64,000 bases of DNA from Klebsormidium nitens. Its lineage: Eukaryota; Plantae; Klebsormidiophyceae. The notes beneath the pieces were generated by a model, which worked only from the letters and a program-made list of their open reading frames with translations, was not told the origin of the DNA and made no database searches. The stretch lies in assembly GCA_000708835.1 (NCBI GenBank), contig DF237147.1:84959-148958 (forward strand), given 5' to 3'. Positions 3,129 to 57,467 of the stretch are shown here, piece after piece. Numbering within the stretch: position 1 is the first letter of the stretch; the number at the start of each line of letters is the position of its first letter. A program made the translations under genes and the position numbers.

Positions 3129-3274
3129 GCCTCACGGGATGCGAAGAGCGCCCCCCAAACATGCGTCCCCGGCCCTAAGGCTACGTACTGACTTTGAGTT
3201 CCAGCTTCAAGCTGTTCACTCAAAACAGCACTGACTCAGGGTGAAAGCACTTTGAACTTGAAGCCCGTCTCCAG

Positions 3275-3292
3275 CTCTGACTCTGACTCTGA
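3275..3292. repeat. (CTCTGA)x3 microsatellite in the ADCS/PWP2 divergent intergenic region
   Basis: ctctga ctctga ctctga read directly from the sequence. Confidence 0.8.
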
Positions 3293-3733
3293 GTCCGAGC
3301 CTGAATCAAGCTGCACAGCATCCTGATTCCTGTTGCATGGGCCTTTGCATGTGGGTAGCATACGTGGTCGGCCCCAAGCAAATTTAACTGCAAGGGCCAA
3401 AACAATCCGAAAAGCATCGACAAGCATGGTTGAGAACGGCATCTTTCCCTGCCGGTTCTGAGTACCCTGTGCACAGAATACTCGAGAAATCAGAATCCAT
3501 CCCAGGCCGCTTTTTTAGCCGTCTAGAGGAACGGCAATTCAAAATTCCATGCAATTTACAATCTCAATATCACATCGCCAATTGATAAGACTATTATATT
3601 GGGCAAAAGCACCCATCGCCTATCGCGCTGGTAACGGCCTGTGTTCCTCCCCCATTATCAAGCGCTCATAGTCAGCATTCCATGGCCGCCCCCTCCTTCC
3701 TCGGCTAGCTCTGCAGCTGCGCCGTTGCCCGCC

Positions 3734-6700
3734 ATGAATTTCAAATTCTCCAACCTGCTGGGCGCCCCATACCGGGGTGGCAACGTGCTGCTGGCTGGGG
3801 ACAAGCAGCTGCTGACGCCCGTCGGCAACCGCGTCAGCCTGGTGGACCTCGCCACCTCGGACACGGTGACGCTGCCCTTTGAGCAGGCCCACAACATCAC
3901 CCGCATCGCGCTGTCCCCTAACGGCGTCCTCCTGCTCAGTGTGGACGAGCAGGGGCGGTGCATCTTAGCCAATCTGCCACGCAGGATAGTGCTGCACCAC
4001 CTCAGCTTCAAGGCCCCCGTGGCCGCCATTAAGTTCAGTCCCGACGGGCAGCTCATTGCAGCGGCGGTGGGCAAGAAGGTGGAGGTGTGGCGCACCCCGG
4101 GGCTGGGCAAGGAGTTCGCGCCCTTCCAGCACGTGCACTCGTTCACGGGCGCGCATGACCAGGTCACCTGCGTCGATTGGAGCCCGGACTCGCGTTCAGT
4201 GCTGGCCGGGTGCAAGGATCTCACGGTGCGGGTATATGGACTCGACAGGGATGCAGTGCATGGGTACAAGCCGTTCACTTTGACGGGCCATCGGGACGTG
4301 CTGGTGGGGGTATTCTGGATCAGGGATGCGGAGGGTGCGGCAACAGGGGCGTACTCTGTCTCGCGCGATGGGGCGCTGTTTGAGTGGCGGCTGGAGCCTG
4401 CGCAGGAAGAGGCTGGGCCGAGCAAGCAGGACGGAGACATGGACGAGGACGAAGCGGAGGCTTCGAACAGGGGTGCGGAGAACGGCCACTCCGCAGAGGA
4501 CGCTCCTTCGACCACCGGGCGAGAAGCGGAACCGTGGCGGTCGCGGCAACGACCGCGGGGCCGGGGCAGCTGGCGGCTGGAGGGCAAGCATTTCTTCCAC
4601 CAGGCGGCCAAGCTGACGTGCGCCGACTACCACCCGGGGTTGAATCTGCTCGTGGCGGGGTTCAGCAGCGGGGTGTTTGGGCTGTACCAGCTCCCCGATT
4701 TTGCGGCGCTGCACCTGCTGAGCGTGAGCAAGGAGGCGCTGACGAGTGTGGCGTTCAGCAGCAATGGGGAGTGGCTGGGGCTGGGGTGCGCCAAGCTCGG
4801 GCAGCTGCTGGTGTGGGAGTGGCGCAGCGAGACATACGTGCTCAAGCAGCAGGGACACTACTACGACGTCAACACGCTGGCGTATGCGGGGGACGGGCAG
4901 CTGATCGCGACGGGCGCGGATGACGCCAAGCTCAAGGTAGGTGTTGCGTTCATGTGCGGGATATTCCGATCTGGCTCCGATCTCGAGAGGAAGATGGCCA
5001 GGGGTCGCAGCCTTGTATAGGTTTGACCGGAGGCTGGTCCTGTTGAAGAGTGCTCTTGGGGCCTATCTGAGGCATCTGACAGATGTCTCGACTGGGTATC
5101 TAGCCTGCATTCTTTAATCCAACAGCGTGAATTTGGACTTACAATCAAAGTGATAACCCAGAAGATCACACGAAGGACGATCTTCTGTTAAGTGTCTTCA
5201 ATTTGCTAGTCTGCTCCCCCTTCTTTCCTGCAAGGCAGGACATCTATACAGTCAAGGACTTTCGGCAATCTCGGCTTGTCTCGAATCTCTTGGAAATGCC
5301 CATGTAGCCCCAAGCGCAGTCGTGCCAGGTTGCTTTTCCTCACTTCCTCACCCCTCTTGCAGATCTGGAATGCGGGTTCGGGCTTCTGCTTCGTGACCTT
5401 CACAGAGCACAAGATGCCCATCACTGCGGTCGCTTTTGCCCCCAGCGGCCATGCCGTCCTGAGCGCCTCGCTGGATGGGACAGTGCGCGCCTTCGACCTG
5501 GTGCGCTACCGCAACTTCCGCACCTTCACCTCCCCCTCCCCCGCGCAATTCGTGAGCCTGGCCGTGGATAACAGCGGGGAAGTCGTCGTGGCAGGCTCCC
5601 TCGATACCTTCCAGGTGAGTTGTTACATCATCATTCCGCTTTTTGTATTCGCTCGTCTTTGGAATAGGGCGCTCATTGGCGCGTATCCTCAAGTCATCTT
5701 GCTCGTACGTTTCTTAAATTGAAGCCTTCTGATTGCGGCAAAGTTTAGGTCATGTATTTCCCGGAGCTAGCTTGCGCTCGAAGATCCGTCTTCAGTTACG
5801 ACACCCTGTCGATTGATGTTGATTGTTGTCCGTGCAGCTCTTCGTGTGGTCCATGAAGACGGGCCGGCTCCTCGACGTCCTGAGTGGCCACGAGGGCCCC
5901 ATCTACGGCCTCTCCTTCAGCCCCACACACGTAAGTTCTGCCTGCCACCCTGCCGCCTTCGTCCTCAGGGCTCGACTCTCAAGCTGATCACATCCTTGCT
6001 GCTCTTCTTCGTAGTCCGCTAAAGGTGTTCGTTCAAGCGTCCTTCTACGAGAGATCGATCGGCTCGCCCAGTGAAATATTTTTGGAGCAAAGGTCAGGGG
6101 CCTTTTACCTTCCTTGTCCTCGTCTCGACCGCGCTTTGTGCCTGCGCAGGAGCTGCTGGCGTCTGCGTCGTGGGACGGCACGGTGCGGTTGTGGAACGTG
6201 TTCTCGGGGAAGGGCGGCACCGAGGTGCTGCAGCACAACCGCGACGTGCTGGCGCTGGCATACCGCCCCGACGGCAAGCAGCTCGCCGCGTGCACGCTCG
6301 ACGCGCAGATCGCATTCTGGGACCCCTTCGAGGGCGTCCAGACGGGCACCATTGAAGGCCGGCGCGACATTGCCGGGGGGCGCCTCGCGACGGACCGTCA
6401 GACCGCAGCCAGCTCCGCGGCGGGCAAGTGCTTCCACACGCTGGCGTACTCGGCGGACGGGGCGTACCTGGTGGCGGGGGGGAACAGCAAGTTTGTGTGC
6501 ATGTACGACGTCGCCGAGAAGGTGAGCCGGGGCAGGAGCCCGGCATCTGTGTGCGGGAGGGATGAGCATTGAGTTTTGAGCCGCTTCGATGGAACGCATG
6601 TGGATTTGCGGTTACTAGTCTCCAGCATGCGATCGACATTCTCGCATGGACGGTCCGCCTGAGTGTCGGATAGCCGCCAGATCGACAAGGTTGTGTCGGA

Positions 6701-30200: not shown

Positions 30201-33200
30201 TCTGGAAGAACTTTTTCCTACGGTATTTGGGAGGGTCGTTGTAGTGCTTCAGTAACAACCAGCGTCGTTGAGGAGGCCTTCTTCCTCTGTCTTGGATGCT
30301 CTTTCGTATACGTCAGATGCAGTCAGTCCTGTCAGAGCAGTGCCTCCCACTGCTTCTCCTCGACTCATTCGTTCAGCCTAATATGCGACTTCTCCGACCC
30401 GGACTTACTATCTTGGCCACCTCGTTGTGCAGGCTCATGCCATCTGCGTCCCCTTGGCCACGTCTTTCTTCTCCCTGTTCCGGCGCACTTTTCCCAGCCA
30501 GCAAAACAACGACTTTGTAGCCCGCGTACGCACCCTGGCCGAGAAGCGCAAGTGGGTGCCCCTCCTCAAGGCCTGTCGCTCTGCCGTCGAGCGTGTGGCC
30601 AAGTTAGCCGACGCCTCCACCGACGGCACACCAGCATTGAGCCCACAAGCAAGCGGGGACGAACCCCAGCCGAAGCAAATAACGAGCAAGAAGAACGGCC
30701 ATCCGTTGAGCAACGGGGGTCCCCAGGGGAGCCCAAAGGGCGCCAAGCGACGCCGGCCAATGGACCCGTCCCTAATGGAGCAGTGGCGCACGTTCGCTGG
30801 GGAGCTGGCACGCGCGGAGCGGCAGGTCGAGGCCGCGCAAACGGCATTCGCATTTGCCTTCATCGAAGGGGCCCTCGTAAAAGCCCTGCGCGAGGGCCAC
30901 TGGCTGCTTTTGGACGAGATCAACCTGGCGCCTGCTGACGCTCTCGAGCGCCTCAGCGGGGTGCTGGACGGCGAGCGGGGATCCCTCTGCCTCACCGAGA
31001 AAGGTGACGTCGAAACCATCCCGCGCCACCCGAGCTTCCGCATCTTTGGCGCAATGAATCCGGCCACTGACGTGGGCAAACGGGACCTGCCGCTGCCCCT
31101 GCGGCAGCGCTTCACTGAGCTGTACGTGGATGAGCTGACGGGACGGGACGATCTGCGCCTGCTGGTGGCGCGCTACTTGGGGGAGGCCGTGCCGGGGGCG
31201 CCGGTTGATGATATTGTCGACTTCTACCTGGCGGCAAGGCAGGAGGCGGAGGCGACGCTCTTGGACGGGGCCAATCAGGTAGGGACTTGCGGTGGGCAGA
31301 GTGTTGCTATAGAATTCGTCGCTCGCAGATGCGCCGCCCGGTTGTCACGGCTGTTGCCAAATCGCCTTGCAAACTGGCGTTACAACTGCTATATTCTTTT
31401 GCAAGCTTGAGTTTGGGAGCCTCTACGAATCTAAACAAGGAGACATTTTTGTTCTTCAAGGCTGAGCGCTTTCTTTCGTAGTGTCCGCCTGACTGTTTGA
31501 AAGACATTGGTGCTGATCCCGCCCGCTTTGCTCGTGCAGCGGCCGGGATACAGCCTGCGCACGCTGTCCCGCGCGCTCGAGTACACGGTGGCGGCGCTGC
31601 CCATCTACGGCTTCCAGCGCGCGCTCTTCGACGGCTTCTGCATGGGCTTCCTCACGCTGCTCGACCGCCCCAGCGCGCCCACCATGGAGCGCCTCCTCGT
31701 GAAGCACCTCCTCAAGGGCAGCGTCGGGGGGCTCAAAGCGCTGCTGCGGCCACCCCCCCAGCCCAGTCCCAACCACGTCCTCTTCGAGCATTTCTGGGTC
31801 GAGGCGGGGACGACGGCGCGCATCCTTTCGGAGGCGGACTTTGCGGAAGGCCCGGGGCGGAGCCGGTATGTGATGACGGAGAGCGTGCGTGAGCATTTGA
31901 AGAACCTCGCGCGCGCGGTGCTGGTGCGGCGGTACCCGATCCTGCTGCAGGGGCCGACGTCGAGCGGGAAGACCAGCCTGGTGGAGCACCTCGCGGCCAG
32001 GACGGGGCACCGCTTCGTGCGCATCAACAACCACGAGCACACCGACCTGCAGGTCAGGCCCATTCCCTTTGGTGGTGACTTGCTTCCGCTTCGAAGAACG
32101 GTTTAGGCTGCAAATACTAAATGTTTATTCATTGAAAGCGAAAGCTGTTTTCAAAATGCTGGTCCTACGGTATAAAGGTTTTTGTTTTTATTTGAATGAA
32201 GTCAGTCTGCCTGAAGGCGATTGTGACAACACCTTCGGCATCTGACCCGCGAAACCGATAGGCACACTGCCCAGGACACTGAGCATGAGTTGCTCGCAAC
32301 TTGCGCTGAAGCTTGTTTCTGTTTGTTCCACCAGGAGTACCTGGGCAGCTATGCCACGGACCCCCAAAGCGGGCGGCTCGTATTCCAGGAAGGCGCCCTG
32401 GTGGAGGCCGTCCGAAAAGGCCACTGGATCGTGCTGGACGAGCTGAACCTGGCGCCGTCGGACGTCCTGGAGGCGCTCAATCGCCTGCTCGACGACAATC
32501 GCGAGCTTTTTGTACCAGAGCTGCAGGTGCGCTGCTTTAGACCACTGGTGGACTTGGCGCCGATGCTTGACATTTCCAGTTACCGGCTTTGTTCTGCTGT
32601 TGTAAGTTTGACCTGATTTACGAGGTTCGTTAAGGTTTCTTGGAAGTACAGCTCCTAAAATGGCCCTTCGACGAGCAGCGTCCTCCTTTGCAGAGAAGCG
32701 GCCGCTACCAGATACTCAAGTCAGGTCTAAGGCCAACCCTGTGCCTCAAGATCGTTACAGTTCTGGGAGAAGAAAAGCAAGTCTGGCGCCTGGGGGCACC
32801 GCCGTTTTGGCGTGCCTTTAAGGCGCCGCTTGCGCATCAGCCGCTCGTTGCCTCAGTGGCCTCTTTTAGTGGCCACCTTCGGTTCATAGTGGCTGAATAT
32901 TTCCTTCAGACGCTCCTCTGCTGTCATGTCTGTTGTCAGTCCGTTTTGTCGGTTTCTCCGACAGCCGCGGTTCTTCGATTTGAGAAATGCTGCCTGCCTG
33001 TTGGAGTCTGTGCTCTGAGCAGACGATGAAAGATTTGCGAAACAACGAATCGTGACTTGTTGCTGGCCTGAACAAACTTGGCAATCAATCGGCGTTTCCC
33101 CTGAAGTGCGTCAGTGTAAACGTCCTCTCTCCTTACTAGTTCTTCGTTGTTCTCCCCTCTCACAGGTGACCATCAAGCCGCACCCCCACTTCATGCTGTT

Positions 33201-36200
33201 TGCCACCCAGAACCCCCCAGGGACCTACGGCGGGCGGAAGGCCCTGTCACGTGCCTTTCGTAGCCGCTTCCTGGAGCTCCACGTGGACGACATCCCTGCG
33301 AGCGAGCTGACCCGCATCCTGGAGCTGCGCTGCGGCATCCCCGCCAGCTACGCTGCCAAGATGGTGGACGTCCTCAAGGACTTGCAGCGGCACCGCCAAG
33401 GCACAGCGGCCTTTGCTGGTGAGGGCTTGGGAGAGGGCTTGACGCTTTTCCTGTTGCTAGGATGAGGAACCGCACAATTTAAGCTGGCATCTGCGTCTCT
33501 TGGTTTTGTTGAAGTCATACGCTCAGCCCTTTCGTTCCTGCGTTGCACCGTGGATTGGCAATGATTGCCGATATTGGGTTTGGCTTGATCGGATGCAACC
33601 CATGGGCGAGACGATCCATGCCCTCGTTCTACTGCAAAGACATACCTGCAAAGACATATCTTGGAGTGATTGAAGTATTGTAGAATCTACGGTTCTGATA
33701 CATACCCTACCTTTTTCTGTCGCAGGCAAGCACGGTTTCGTGACCCCCCGTGACCTGTTCCGGTGGGCGGAGCGGCATGCAACTGGCTACGAGGAGCTGG
33801 CTCGGGACGGTTTCCTGCTGCTGGGGGAGAGACTGCGGGACGAGGCGGAGAAGCAGATTGTGAAAGCCACTCTGGAGAAGCACATGCGGGTCAAGCTGGA
33901 CTTGTCTACGCTGCACGAGGTGTGGGTGCCACTCCACCATGATCTGCTTTCATCTTTTTCCACGTGCCCTTGCAGCCATCTCGAATCTTGTGCATGGGCT
34001 AGCTCTCAATAGGCATTCGTGCTCAGCAGTGACAGTCGCTTCGCCGTTGCTTTCGCACTTGCATCACCAGGTACTAATCTCTTTGGGACCCGCAGACATT
34101 CACGCGTGCTACATCCTGGCAATCTTGTTGATAAAGCGGCACCACCCAGAAACGCCTCTTGAAGCATATGACATCTATTGAGTTCTCCTTTCGACACTCG
34201 CAGGTGTCCAGCTCCGAGGCCTTCCAGGCGCTGGAGCAGCGCATGCGCGCGCCCGACGCGGTGGCCGCAGTGGGCAAGATCGTGTGGACGGGGGCGATGC
34301 GGCGGCTGTTCCACCTGGTGGAGCGGTGCCTGGCGCACAACGAGCCGGCGCTGCTGGTGGGCGAGACGGGCGCGGGCAAGACCAGCGTGTGCCAGATGCT
34401 GGCGCTCCTGCGCGGCCAGCGCCTGCACATCCTCAACTGCCACCAGCACACCGAGACCTCCGACTTCCTGGGGGGTTTCCGCCCGGTCAGGTAAGAACCG
34501 GGAGCTGCGGTGGCGAACTTAGAGTGATTTGCCTACTCCTGGGCCAGGACTCTGTGGTGGAATCAAGCGGACGGTTTGTTTGATCTCCCTTTGTTCTTAG
34601 CACAAATGTACGTTGACTGCTGCGAAAAGCGTTAGAGATTTGCAAGTTTTGAGTCAAGGTTACAAACCATTTTACCCCTGGAAGAAACGGCTTAAATGAG
34701 GGGTGCCGGGGCTCTGATCTTGTTTCTCTGCTTTTCTGCTCCAGGGACCGGGAGCGCACGGCTGCTCGCGCCACTGCGCTCTCTACAGAGGTGGCCCAGC
34801 ATCCGCTGTTCCAAGCCACCGTCTTAGAGCTCGACCCCGCCGCCCAAAGCCCATTCATCAGCACCGACGTACAGGACGCCGCAGTTACCATCTCTTTGAT
34901 CAATCGGGTCGTCCACACTCTTCATGCACGCACACAGTCTCCGTCAGAATCACTAGCGGAGGGAATAGAATGCCTGACATCAGCAGCGGCTGAGCTGCAG
35001 CAGCTGGTGGGGGAATGGCAGGCCCTGTTTGCGTGGCACGACGGTCCTCTGGTGGCGGCGATGCGCAACGGCGACATGCTGCTAGTGGACGAGATCTCGC
35101 TCGCAGAGGACAGCGTGCTCGAGAGGCTCAACAGCGTGCTGGAGCCCAAGAGGCTGCTGGTGAGCCGCTACTGCCGCTCAAAGTCTCTGGCGATTTGCGC
35201 CCTTTCTTCATCACGGTATCTGGTAGCGTCGATCGGATATGAGCGCATTCGAGTGGACTCTGTTCTTCGAGCGCGTCGTTGAAGCCGGAGCGTTGAGCCT
35301 TGTCCATGAATTGTTGGGTTCGTTTCCTTGCTGTAAGCTTCAAGTTTCATCTTTATCTGCCTTCAAAGGCTGTGCCTTGAAAAACTAGCGCTAGGGCTAA
35401 GGTTTTCTCCCTAGCCCTGTTGGCTGAGCACGCTTTAAATCCTGTGGCGGTAGCCTCCTGGCAATGAAGCTGCATAATCAGGCGTGCAACAGAAATTTGC
35501 AGTATTCCGTGTCTCTCCAGCCCGCCCGTGTTGGTCTGACTAGACATTCTGCACATATCTCATTATCACAAATATCGCTCGAAGATATATCCTCATCCAG
35601 TGCGCTCGTGACACTCGTCTGGCGCTTTGGCTGCAAAGCCCACGCGGTTGACACTTCTCTTCGCCTTTCGTTGTGGGCCTTTCGTTGCGGGGCTTGCAAC
35701 TTTTGATTCTCCTCACGATTGGGACCTCAGAAGCGTCCGCCCACATCCCCTTCTCCCCCTCCGTCTCCCCCCACAGGTCCTGGCTGAGAAGGGCGGCACA
35801 ACCGTGGAGGAGCTGGTGGCACACCCCAACTTCCGGCTGCTGGCCACCATGAATCCGGGGGGCGACTTCGGCAAGAAGGAGCTCTCGCCTGCGCTGCGCA
35901 ACCGTTTCACCGAGCTCTGGGTGCCCGCCATCACCAACCTGGACGACCTGCGCAGCATCGTCCAGGACCGCCTCCCCCAGGGGGAACTTCGTCCGCTCGC
36001 CGAGCCGTTGTTACGCTTCTGGCAGGTGGGTTGCCAATTTGCTCTCTGCTCGAGTGTCAACGCTTGCTGTGCTTTCTTCAACATGGTCGTTGAATGTATC
36101 TTCTTTCAGGCCGGTCGTCATCAGCGCGTATAAGCCAAAGGCCCTTGTGTACTTCAAATGCTGGCAGACTGAGCCCCGATTTCGTTGAGTCTCTGTCGTT

Positions 36201-45200: not shown

Positions 45201-48200
45201 CCTTCTTTCCCCAAAGTGCTTTCTAGAGCTGCAGAGACAATTTAACACACTTCAGCCGTCTCCGTGGGTCAGTGCATGAATCGTATACCTGCTAACAAGG
45301 AAGAGCGGCTGCTTGGAACACTTGCTCTTTCCCCTGCGACTGCTGTCCTTACCTCGAAAGTTCTAATCCACTCCTGTTGGGTTGCAGGTGCGGCGCAAGC
45401 ACGAGAAGGCTGCCGAGGCCCTGTGGTTTGCTCTGTACGGCCTGGTCCACCGCCCCGGTGCGGCCAGCACGGCGCCTGACGCTACCACCCCAGCCCCCAA
45501 CCCCACCGATCGCGACGCCAAGCCGGCCCCCAGCGCTCTGTCCACGACTATCGCCGGTGTCGAGGAGTTCATCCAGACGTCAACCCTAGGAGAGTATCAC
45601 CGCCGCCTCCAGATGGTCGCCGCTTTCGGGGGCGAGATGAGCGTCCGGGCGCGTGGTGCCGACAACGCAGAGATGGCGGCACTCTCGTCGGCCCTGAAAA
45701 CAGTCCACAGCTACTACTGCCAGTTTGTGCCGACGGTGGCGGATGCGCTGCGCGCGGGGGGCGACCTGGTGGAGAAGGAGCTGCGCGAGTTCGTGCGGCT
45801 GCAGAAGTGGGAGGACCGCAACGTGTACGCCATGCAGGCGTCCGCGGAGAGGAGCCACCGCAAGCTGCACAAGCTGGCCAGCAAGCTCGACGTGAGGGCG
45901 CCGCTCATTGCTGCGTATCTGAGAGGGAGATTCTCTAATGGGCAGGACGATGAAACCGGGAGTCCTCGTTTAAGGGGAGAACCATGCCGGATCGAAGCCA
46001 AATCCGAAGGAGCTGTGTGGACGAGGGTTGCGGTCATGTATGCTTCAAGTCGCGGGCAATCTTTTCTTCTGGCTTTCCCCCGCCATACGAGTACGCTTAA
46101 CGGTCGACTTCGATTGTTGGGAATGTTTGTGTATTGCAGAGACTGCGTTGGCATCTCAAATCTCCTGATTCTCAACACCGAGATTTACAGGTTCTGCTTC
46201 ATAATCAAAGCGGTCACGTGCTTCTGCAGGAGGTGCTGAAGCAGCCCGTCGCTCAGCTGCTGGCCCGCCAGTCGGACAAGGTCGGCTTCTCCGAGCTGGC
46301 CAAACTGGGCGGCTCTGCTCCTGAATCGCTACCCGCAGGCAAGGAACCGGTGGACGCAGCGTCCAAGGCTGGGGAAGCGGCTGCCGGCGTGTCTGCGACC
46401 GACGAGGAGGATGCGATCGAGGCCGGAGCAGAGGGCCCAGGAGTGCAACAGCAGTGGTCGGAGTTCTGCTCTGCTCGCCTAGCAGCGCTGACTGAGGGCC
46501 ACGAGGGAGAGGTGGTCGAGAAAGGTGGGAAACGCTCATGGGCGAGGGTCAATCGAGTTTGTGTACCTCTCATCATCCTGCTTATATGTGGTAAAACTTC
46601 GAATGCGGTGGGTTTTTGGGTGTTGTCTTATCTTGTAACGCTGATTCTGGCTGTGTCTTGGTTGTTCTGTCGATGATACGAGCTCAGTATCTTGATCCGA
46701 GCTTACTCTTGCCTTTCAATGAGGATCCTGCCTCCGTTATTGAAGAAGGCCGGGCAAGAATCCACATCATCGGGGGTTTTGCGTCCCTTGAAAGTTCGGT
46801 CGGCTCGTCGCTTGAAGGTTTTGCTATATTACTCTGCTCAAAGGCTGCTGTGATCGTGCACGAAGCCCCGTGATGAAACCAATCTACCCTCCAGATTGGG
46901 GCGGCTCTCTTTCTGAGAGCTTGTCCCTTTCCATGATGGCGGTAAATGTCATAGTTACTCTGAGGGCTTTCTTGCACGACAAGAACAGCATGTTTTAAGG
47001 TCCTTGCCGATCTGGGAACCAGCATTTGTTGTCTGCTTTTGGACTTCAATCCCTACTTCCTTTTGGTGGGTGAGAGGATATTGACATCCGCTTGTCATTT
47101 TCTGGGTACAAACTTCGCTTCGACGCTCAATACCACTGCGTGTGACAGGGACTAGTCTACGTTGCCTTCTTCGCCTTTGGCTGCCTTTCAATCCTTTTGG
47201 TAACCACCCCGACTAATGGAGAATCTACCCACATCTGCCGGTCGCTTTGCTTTTGATTTCAAGCCATTGTTCACCTGCCCCTTTCTCTGCGCGTACCCCC
47301 TCAGGGCCCCGCCCGCTGTACCAACACCGCCTGCCGTCCCTGGCGGCTCGCCTGAGCCAGCTCCTCGGGTCCACGGTCCTGTCGGAGCAAGGCGCGCGGC
47401 GCCGCAAGGGTGGAGCGGATGCGGTGGAGCGGCTGAGCGGCGTGATAGTACGGCGCGCGCAGGCGCTGAAGGCCAGCGAGGCCAAGCGCAGCGTCAAGAA
47501 GAAGGCGCTCGTGGACCTGCTCAAGGGGCTGCGCGGCCTCGGGCTGTCGCACCACAAGTGAGGCGGCTAAGCAAGGGCAGCACTTGGCCACTGCTTTCGA
47601 ATGAAGAGGCGTCGGATGTTCTGATGATTCTCTTACATCAGAGTACGTCTGTATAGATCAAGAGGTCAGAACGTCATCTTGGGCTGACGTGAATGGGAAG
47701 GTGCGATGCTCCTGTCCGATTCTTGTCATTCATTGGAAGTTTGCCATTCACGTTAAGTACACGTGCCCTCCGAAGCTGTTCTGGTTGGGATCACGCACAA
47801 TCTAGCACCTCGAAGGCATGGCGACTGTCCAACCGGATCTTTAAAGGTTGCGAACCCTCTCCCTCCCTTTCCTCAGGTCTGCTGTTCCTGTTGAAGAGCG
47901 GGACCCCAAGAACTGGTTCCTGCTGGCCCGCCCCGACCACGCGGAACGACTCTACACGGTTGCGAACCTGGATGCGGAGACGGAGGACTTCGTAGTGGCG
48001 TCGTCCGTGGCGGGCGCTGCCAGCTGGGGCCGAGCGGAGGGGTACTACCATCGCAACATGGCGCAGCTCCAGCAGCTGTGGCAGGCGCGCCAGGACTTCA
48101 GCAAGGACCTCAGCCTTAGAGAGGTGCGGCGCACAACCAAAGAGCAAGGGAGCTTGATATCCGATTGATCCTCCTGTGGCTTTGTCGAGCCAGACATGTT

Positions 48201-54925: not shown

Positions 54926-57467
54926 ATGGCCTTCCGGGTGGCAGCTTCTGTTGGCACCAGAGCTTGTGGTTGCAAAATCCGAGTGACGACCTGCGCCCTG
55001 GATGTAGGCCAGAGAGTTTTATCCCCAGCAGGGTTGCCGCCTTCAAGGCATCTCAATCGCTCCAGCAAGATCTACAGGACTGGGCAGCCAGGGCAGCATT
55101 CTCCAAAAGTCGAGCCATCCCTACAGGCGAGACTTGAGGAAGGCGGGAAAAGTCTTCTCTTTAGTGGCAGTCATCACAAGACAGCAGAACTGGGGTGCAA
55201 AGTTGGGAGCAGAACCTGGCACTCGCGCAGTGGAGCTGACCAAATGGTGGTGAACACCGCTGAGCAGGAATCTACCAAGAGGAAGCTGCCTGTCCTCCTG
55301 TTCGACGTGATGGTGGGTTCTTCCATTCAAGAGCATTCCAGAATAGTCATATGCACTTCACTCGTCCAGTTAGAGAACAATGCCTCTGCAACTGAATGGA
55401 TCTGCCCCATCATCATCCTTCAATGGAACCGGAGCAGAGCTGAATACACCAAATTTTGAGCTTGCAACGAGACAACATAAGCTTGTCTAAGTAAGCTAGT
55501 GTTGTGCTGCCTCCTGTCACTGTGTGAAAGCCTGAATGTGCTTACTTTCGAATGATGCACTGATGACTTGCTCAATCTGCCATGGCAGGATACCTTGATA
55601 CGGGACCCTTTCTATGAGGATATGCCCAAGTTCTTCAAGTGAGTTCTCCATCTCTTCTTGGCTTTAACGCCGTAGTAAAAGCCTCCAGAACTGTGTAAAA
55701 CAGTGCGTTGTTCCTTCGAACAGCGGCCTCGACTGAAGCAGCTTTTTGAGATATAGTGATGGTGGAAGTGGAGTGTCGGGGGTCCTTTCGAAGATTGACT
55801 CGTTTGTGTGAAGTAATCCAAGCCCAGGCAAAGGGGTTTCTGTTGATTGCAGCTTCAACTGCCACTACGTATACCAAGACTTTTGCTTTGATCACGCTTT
55901 GAGGGCCTTCAATCAAAGTGTCCTGTGCTTGAAAGGGCTCGTTATTCTGTCCAGCAGCACGGAGTTGCCATCATCCTCCGACTATTGAACGGAGCGCTTC
56001 AACTGACTTTCATCCTCTTCTCGAACTCGTTGCCCAATGCTGAGTCATTCTCCACACATGTAGGTTGACTTTGAAAGAGTTGTTTGCGGTCAAGCATCCG
56101 ACCGCATGGATTGAGTTTGAGACGGGGTTGATCTCAGAGGTAAGTTGAGGCCAAGCGCGAGCTCGCCGCATCAAGCGCGGTATGTTCTACGATTTTCTAC
56201 GCAGCGGGGACGTGGTTGGAAGTTGAGTGGAAGTACTGGCGGCTTGTAAGCGGCTGTTATGTAAGCGTTGGTTTCTGTGAGGTCAGGTATCCACTCGTTT
56301 GTCACCACAAGGCCTGACCTTGATGACGATTTTTATCACAGGGAGAGCTCCTCAGCAAGTTCTTTAAGGACGGCAGGGACTTCGATTTGACGGGTAAGTC
56401 AAGTCATTTCTAAGATTTGCTGCGTTGGAGGTTTGTCCTTTTTGCTGCGCAAGCCTTTATAGAAGGAGTTTGAAGCAGACTCTGGCGGACAAAGTGAAGC
56501 AGATTCTGGCTGAAAACGCGAAGTGGATTCTATATTCTTGACGTTCCCCTTAAGAACCCCTTGACTCTAACACGCCAGGATAGACAATCGAAGTTGCAAG
56601 CTTGACCCAAGTCGGGAGTACTTTGATTGGAATCCGGTCTTGTCCTCATAGGTAGGCAAGGCAGGTTCCTGGTCAAAGTCGAAGGCAGACTTCAAAAAAC
56701 GTTGACATCTTGTCCACTATTCGTGTTACTCAGGCTTGAAGGACTGCGCCTATGAAGGCTACCGGTGGATCGAAGGGTGCGAAGATCTGTTGCGAAGGGT
56801 TCAGGAAGCTGGGTACGAAGCTCATGCGTTCACAAACTATCCACACTGGTGAGCAAAGGAGGCCCCTTTTACTTTTCTTTCGTGAAGCTTCTCATATATC
56901 TTTCTAGCCGGTGAAGACAGAGGACTGTAGTTCTCCTGGACATCCTTCTCCTGATACAGTTTGTTGGTGGCCTGATGCTGACTCCAAATATTTTTGATCA
57001 TGATAGGTACAAAATGATCGAAGAGAAGCTGTCACTCTCGAGATACCTGGACTGGACGTTCGTCTCTTGCCACACAGGTTCGTGTCCCCGGATCAGTATC
57101 TGACGTGTGCACACCCTTCGCCGATTGAGGATTCGTAGTGATGTACGTCGATCTTAGTTTTTGCAGTTGTCCGTGCTCGTTGTGTCCTCACTCTCTTGGC
57201 CCTTTTAGATTCACATGCGCTGGCTTTTCTGCAAATGCAGGGCGAAGGAAACCTGACTTGGAGGCCTTCATGGAAGCAGCCACGACACTTGGATTGGAAC
57301 CACAGGATTGTGTCTTCATCGACGATCGGTTGAAGAACGTAGAAGCCGCACAGGCAGTAGGTATGGCAGGTATCCTCTTTGAAAGTGCTTCGTCGTTAGA
57401 AGTAGAGCTAGAGAAACTGGGGATAAGTCTAGAGTCGCAACCGCTTCAACCTTCGTTACCCTTATGA
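54926..57467 (+). CDS. HAD-superfamily hydrolase, chloroplast FMN hydrolase (FHY1-like)
   Basis: Seven exons starting 54926-55312, 55589-55638, 56064-56139 and 56342-56393, ending at TGA 57467. Motifs RKLPVLLFDVMDTLIRDPFY, KHPTAWIEFETG, HAFTNYPHW, RRKPD and CVFIDDRLKNVEAA, plus an N-terminal transit-like extension. Confidence 0.88.

Follow-up and report, generated by a model that had tools for sequence, protein, structure and literature searches.

One adenosine in the large-subunit rRNA carries a near-universal ribose methylation, found in Arabidopsis, tomato, tobacco, human and yeast and predicted in Ostreococcus tauri (PMC11542601, Table 2; PMC8583080; PMC5344495). Am2257 of Arabidopsis is the same site as Am2259 of tomato and tobacco, Am3760 of human, Am2256 of yeast and the predicted Am2099 of O. 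tauri (PMC11542601, Table 2). In yeast, snR63 is the guide of this methylation, which is located in the helix-69 loop, close to the A-site tRNA (PMC5344495, PMC2794176). The neighboring pseudouridine, yeast Psi2258, is guided by snR191 (PMC2794176). RiboMethSeq work lists AtU40 as the guide of Am2257 in Arabidopsis 25S rRNA (PMC8583080). An intron of RPS8 is the home of human SNORD46 (PMC5025248), and the O. tauri homologue of SNORD46 and snR63, Ot-CDsno82, is a 98-nt RNA encoded in an intron of Cpn60 (PMC7671301, Tables S3 and S5 and sequence file).

A third of the intronic snoRNAs of O. tauri sit in genes for ribosome biogenesis, and the first three introns of a midasin-related gene, ostta01g04120, host Ot-HAsno4, Ot-HAsno5 and Ot-CDsno6 (PMC7671301). 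Our literature search found no snoRNA catalogue for Klebsormidium, and no paper joining midasin with a methylation guide for helix 69. Here we analyze a 64,000-nt stretch of the Klebsormidium nitens genome (the window), in which a midasin intron very probably encodes a functional box C/D snoRNA, the algal counterpart of plant U40, human SNORD46 and yeast snR63 (Table 1).

Table 1. Coordinates of the predicted snoRNA, its host gene and two further intronic candidates in the window.
Feature	Position	Strand	Basis
Predicted box C/D snoRNA, entire unit with its extended closing stem	46854-46979	+	Sequence, fold, Rfam match
Closing stem, 5' arm (15 nt); partner is 46964-46979	46854-46868	+	Pair count
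C box GTGATGA (ATGATGA in four relatives)	46870-46876	+	Sequence and alignment
Invariant 13-mer CTACCCTCCAGAT	46884-46896	+	Identical in 6 of 6 sequences
Internal hairpin between D'-like and C'-like boxes; contains CTGA at 46913-46916	46898-46927	+	11 pairs
C'-like box ATGATGG	46933-46939	+	Unchanged in all relatives
Antisense guide GTCATAGTTACT (12 nt), complementary to 25S AGUAACUAUGAC	46948-46959	+	Exact in relatives
D box CTGA	46960-46963	+	Sequence; kept in all relatives
Closing stem, 3' arm (16 nt)	46964-46979	+	Pair count
Host midasin gene (approximate span)	27646-54003	+	AAA_5, AAA_lid_7 and AAA_lid_5 (midasin lid) domains; ends approximate
Upstream midasin exon	46230-46524	+	Frame, spliced joint, relatives
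Host intron (780 nt, GT..AG, phase 1)	46525-47304	+	Spliced joint; frame continuous across the joint
Downstream midasin exon	47305-47558	+	Frame, spliced joint
U19/SNORA74-like H/ACA RNA candidate in another midasin intron	32707-32901	+	Rfam, fold, conservation, pocket match
Third conserved low-G+C intronic island with H/ACA-like layout	35427-35559	+	Conservation, hinge pattern

A predicted snoRNA gene and its host intron

Several features of the box C/D class are present: a RUGAUGA C box near the 5' end, a CUGA D box near the 3' end, a terminal stem that joins the two boxes and an antisense element of at least 10 nt immediately upstream of D. The original prediction had named the two boxes and a stem of 6 bp extending to about 14 bp, and each is found in place, the stem counting 15 pairs with one bulged T and one C.T mismatch. 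A 71-nt interior separates the C box from the guide. Folding of a 136-nt stretch gives -51.4 kcal/mol (z = -4.3), a value equalled by none of 200 shuffles. We infer a mature RNA of about 100 nt, spanning approximately 46865-46968.

Within the interior, the C'-like box, put forward earlier as a possibility, is identical in all relatives. The D' box has two options, the CTGA at 46913, which lies within the hairpin and is GTGA in one relative (L005), or a CAGA at 46892-46895; neither has an rRNA guide upstream. A second guide was sought in the invariant 13-mer, in the sequence following the C box and in the sequence upstream of the internal CTGA, and no rRNA complement beating shuffled controls was found in any of these. 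The 13-mer may be a degenerate D' region (it includes the CAGA); alternatively, it may have a structural role or direct the RNA to a target other than rRNA. The first half of the RNA, on the D' side, is probably structural with a degenerate D' motif, since the same layout (C box, short spacer, degenerate D', long hairpin, C', guide, D) is common to more than 100 metagenome snoRNAs that carry the same guide.

Rfam at curated gathering thresholds gave no match within the window. A permissive search of 801 nt around the element aligned SNORD46 (RF00218) at full model length, with 23.3 bits and an E value of 0.016. This was the covariance check proposed earlier, and its score falls short of the gathering score of 40. 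SNORD46 is the sole snoRNA family to match the whole unit in this search; snoR442 and GlsR7 match through the shared guide only.

The host was predicted to be midasin, and the snoRNA unit does lie in a spliced intron on the same strand as the midasin open reading frames. Several AAA_5 domains and two midasin-specific lid domains are encoded by + strand open reading frames at approximately 27.6-42.3 kb, and two related contigs carry the JGI product name 'midasin'. A Pfam search of the two exons flanking the 46525-47304 intron returned no domain, and a domain search of the open reading frames of the window detected no C-terminal MIDAS domain. The identity of the host is drawn from the AAA exons further upstream. 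The exons have about 65-70% G+C and the introns about 48%. Contigs from four runs of four studies contain the 46524-47305 joint and skip precisely the 780 intervening bases, from which we conclude that the intron is real and that these runs are RNA. The snoRNA unit has the sense orientation and sits near the middle of this intron, with 330 nt separating it from the 5' splice site and 325 nt from the 3' splice site. The next midasin intron contains a short hairpin (CTGATG ... CATCAG at 47615-47645, + strand) that has neither a D box nor a guide. Downstream of midasin is an open reading frame with a HAD-like hydrolase domain (57138-57467, + strand), presumably the next gene.

The RNA evidence from the locus consists of assembled contigs from what seem to be mRNA libraries, so that neither ends nor levels can be read from it. 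One run yielded a separate, low-depth contig of 236 nt (46851-47086) that starts at the base of the closing stem and runs about 100 nt beyond the predicted 3' end, and a different run yielded a 652-nt contig spanning most of the intron. These intronic contigs are compatible with processing intermediates or with unspliced RNA. An extra share of matching words in runs X8-X10 was considered as a signal of the snoRNA and rejected, as its source is an unrelated piece of the intron (46571-46750).

Conservation and the predicted site in helix 69

A word search with the 817-residue exon just upstream identified four relatives with 73-89% protein identity. Six contigs (L001-L006) represent these algae, of which five reach the element and one ends short of it; in those five, the protein identity of the adjoining exon is 74-89%. 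All five contain an exact copy of the 16-nt guide plus D box, always on the midasin strand and always between the orthologues of the two flanking exons, and thus in the orthologous intron. The inspection of relatives that had been suggested for this locus therefore finds the boxes, the guide and the stem conserved in every contig that extends to the place.

In the alignment, identity is near-complete across the whole unit, both arms of the closing stem included, and collapses in the diverged intron sequence on either side. When the window was mapped by blastn to L002 and L004, the conserved blocks were nearly all high-G+C exons, with two low-G+C exceptions; the block of the element spans 46854-46985 in the first comparison and 46857-46976 in the second. 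Across five distinct sequences, 94.5% of cells are paired in the closing stem and the internal hairpin at 46898-46927. Two pairs of the closing stem have changed on both sides with pairing kept (A-U to G-C and C-G to U-A), three relatives have a C-G pair in place of the C.T mismatch of the window, and the internal hairpin shows one C-G to U-G change. The C box varies only at its R position, between G and A. Of the two internal hairpins originally described, both can be formed by the window sequence; the second is the one conserved together with the closing stem, but CCAATCT/AGATTGG was rejected as a conserved structure, with 63% of cells paired and zero compensation. Covariation can be regarded as supportive, and not as statistically strong, because the five sequences derive from perhaps three or four lineages. 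The sharp footprint is the stronger argument.

The target was sought in a complete plant-type 18S-5.8S-25S unit (L144). The rDNA came from eukaryotic contigs that contaminate bacterial assemblies; L120 and L144 were used, and contigs from human-associated samples were left out, as their rDNA might be human. L120 and L144 are both filed under leaf-nodule Burkholderia of plants, and we infer that they are of plant origin. On L144, Rfam identifies the 18S, 5.8S and 25S genes at full length, the last at 3236-6623. Contaminating contigs with eukaryotic LSU rDNA occur in at least 76 assemblies that are labelled bacterial or archaeal (L119-L194), and several Streptomyces-type records among these have rDNA contigs of identical size (7682 nt). 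A search for rDNA in viral contigs gave no match.

The guide has one perfect match on L144, with 12 of 12 Watson-Crick pairs at 5488-5499; the runner-up site has two mismatches, and the duplex energies are -16.9 and -12.3 kcal/mol, respectively. The complementarity to a universal LSU segment that had been described is thus perfect and unique in a complete rDNA unit. By the D+5 rule, the fifth guide base from box D pairs with position 5492 of L144, which is 25S position 2257. This is the second A of GUAAC, as anticipated, and PMC11542601 (Table 2) equates it with yeast Am2256. The links drawn earlier to yeast Am2256 and snR63, to human SNORD46 in RPS8 and to plant U40 are borne out by PMC5344495, PMC5025248, PMC8583080 and PMC11542601. 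As the hit on A2257 matches the published equivalences of the site, we consider the earlier target assignment and comparisons correct.

In the mechanism that we propose, the C and D boxes, joined by the closing stem, would form a kink-turn recruiting Snu13, Nop56, Nop58 and fibrillarin. After debranching, exonucleases would trim the intron down to the protected particle, leaving an RNA of approximately 100 nt. The guide adjoining box D would then pair with AGUAACUAUGAC of the 25S rRNA, which lies in the loop and 3' strand of helix 69, and fibrillarin would methylate the 2'-OH of the A opposite the fifth guide base, the equivalent of A2257 in plants, A2256 in yeast and A1913 in E. coli.

Alternative explanations and the wider context

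A pattern scan of metagenome contigs identified 112 contigs (L007-L118), of diverse eukaryotic origin, in which the identical guide stands between a C box and a D box. Several bear two or three tandem copies with the same guide (e.g., L081, L118, L104), and a long hairpin separates D' from C' in most of these snoRNAs. None of the 112 has similarity to the + strand open reading frames of the midasin region of the window, which is weak negative evidence given such short contigs and a poorly conserved linker. The guide is also absent from two other midasin genes examined, one of them intronless and from a metagenome, the other from GCA_003614705.1. The pairing of midasin with a helix-69 guide appears to be confined to this algal clade, and to be unreported. 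The original prediction called it a probably unannotated pairing of host and guide, and in the literature found the pairing is indeed unreported. The novelty was overstated, however, as three intronic snoRNAs have already been described in the midasin gene of O. tauri (PMC7671301). Only the combination of host and guide looks new, given that the SNORD46-type RNA of O. tauri sits in an intron of Cpn60.

Several other readings of the element have to be weighed against a methylation guide. It could act in cis on the midasin pre-mRNA, as a conserved element with the shape of a snoRNA that binds kink-turn proteins and tunes splicing or transcript level. The unusual length of the closing stem (15 pairs), the invariant 13-mer with its lack of an rRNA target and the lack of a free small RNA among the RNA contigs of the locus would fit such a role. 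The strictest conservation, however, falls on the 12-nt rRNA antisense element, which is in register with box D and recurs unchanged as the guide in over 100 snoRNAs of unrelated eukaryotes. The identity of an rRNA antisense element is not needed for a function in cis; thus, a purely cis-acting role is disfavored, and we consider it very unlikely.

An even slimmer chance is given to a redundant or decaying extra copy that drifts while the working guide is located elsewhere in the genome. Such copies are conceivable because snoRNAs are mobile and often multi-copy, but here the boxes, guide and stem are intact in at least four diverged lineages, with compensatory changes in the stem, and the neighboring intron sequence has diverged. 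Chance resemblance within intron sequence has nothing to recommend it except that the motifs are short. With up to two mismatches allowed, the window still contains a single match to the 16-nt guide plus D box, against an expectation from shuffles of 0.05 such matches per window. Exact conservation in five related loci refutes chance resemblance, the probability of which we regard as negligible. A functional, intron-encoded methylation guide is therefore the reading that we retain.

The midasin gene contains two further conserved intronic islands, both with an H/ACA-like layout. A permissive Rfam scan of the whole window returned a single match, to SNORA74 (RF00090), at 32707-32901 on the + strand and at full model length; the 37.6 bits (E value of 5e-6) are below the gathering score of 71. 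The matched sequence is in a low-G+C intron zone, folds into three hairpins (z = -5.1) and shows sharply bounded conservation in L001 and L197; its 3' box, AUA in the window, is ACA in L197. The best match of its first pocket (AGUCA plus GUUAC, 14 nt from the H box) in the rDNA unit is 25S U2259, with 5 + 5 perfect pairs. This predicted target, the equivalent of yeast Psi2258, is two bases 3' of A2257. For the third hairpin, the predicted target is 18S U1420 (in the numbering of the plant contig). The island at 35427-35559 is conserved in L001, L002 and L197 (89% identity to L002 and L197), and the hinge sequences found there (ACAGAA, ACAAAA or ACAACA) are those expected of an H box in which only the free positions vary. 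Its fold is non-significant (z = 0.36), and prediction of rRNA targets gave nothing convincing for it.

It is mildly unusual that the same gene carries an H/ACA candidate aimed two bases from the predicted methylated A. In this algal lineage, midasin could be a dedicated host of helix-69 guides, with one pre-mRNA yielding a C/D guide for Am2257 together with an H/ACA guide for the neighboring pseudouridine, in fixed proportion and in step with the 60S remodeling ATPase. We consider this proposal doubtful. If it were true, modification of an intersubunit-bridge hairpin would be supplied in fixed proportion and timed with that ATPase. The locus offers a concrete case for asking whether co-hosting of guides for adjacent nucleotides of helix 69 matters functionally.

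The analysis adds one well-supported snoRNA gene to an alga for which no snoRNA catalogue was found in the literature, or three genes if the two neighboring candidates are counted. It also shows that a guide whose rRNA methylation ranks among the most conserved changed hosts in the green lineage, being placed in a Cpn60 intron in Ostreococcus, at separate loci in Arabidopsis and in midasin in this alga. The accepted view of snoRNA action is unchanged by the finding, which is an ordinary new member of a known family with a host association that has a green-algal precedent.

Comparison with known systems

The element resembles human SNORD46 (U46, RF00218) in the core of its D-box guide (GUCAUAGUUAC), in its predicted helix 69 target (28S Am3760), in its length of about 100 nt and in being encoded in an intron. 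The interior sequences are unrelated, the base adjoining box D is A in SNORD46 and U in the algal element, and the hosts are RPS8 and midasin, respectively. Arabidopsis AtU40, a guide of 25S Am2257, shares the position predicted for the algal element, and the two are likened by target position only. AtU40 is encoded away from Arabidopsis MDN1, which is on chromosome 1; its two or three loci map to chromosomes 3/4 and 5. Yeast snR63 guides methylation of the homologous A of the helix-69 loop (25S Am2256), but it is independently transcribed and is a much longer RNA. Ot-CDsno82 is green-algal and intronic and has the guide core in common with the K. nitens element, although its host is the chaperonin gene Cpn60 and not midasin.

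As a host, the K. nitens gene resembles ostta01g04120, a green-algal midasin with two H/ACA snoRNAs and one C/D snoRNA in separate introns, to be compared with the two H/ACA-like islands and the one C/D island of the window. The two sets are likened by layout only. Both H/ACA RNAs of O. tauri have predicted 18S targets, and none of its three RNAs carries the helix-69 guide. The candidate at 32707-32901 shares the three-hairpin H/ACA form of U19/SNORA74 and of snR191, which we take to be the yeast U19 homologue, and its pocket strands bracket the helix-69 U that corresponds to yeast Psi2258. It differs from them in its sub-threshold score, in having AUA for the ACA box in the window, and in the prediction of a single helix-69 site, with the third hairpin pointing to 18S rRNA.
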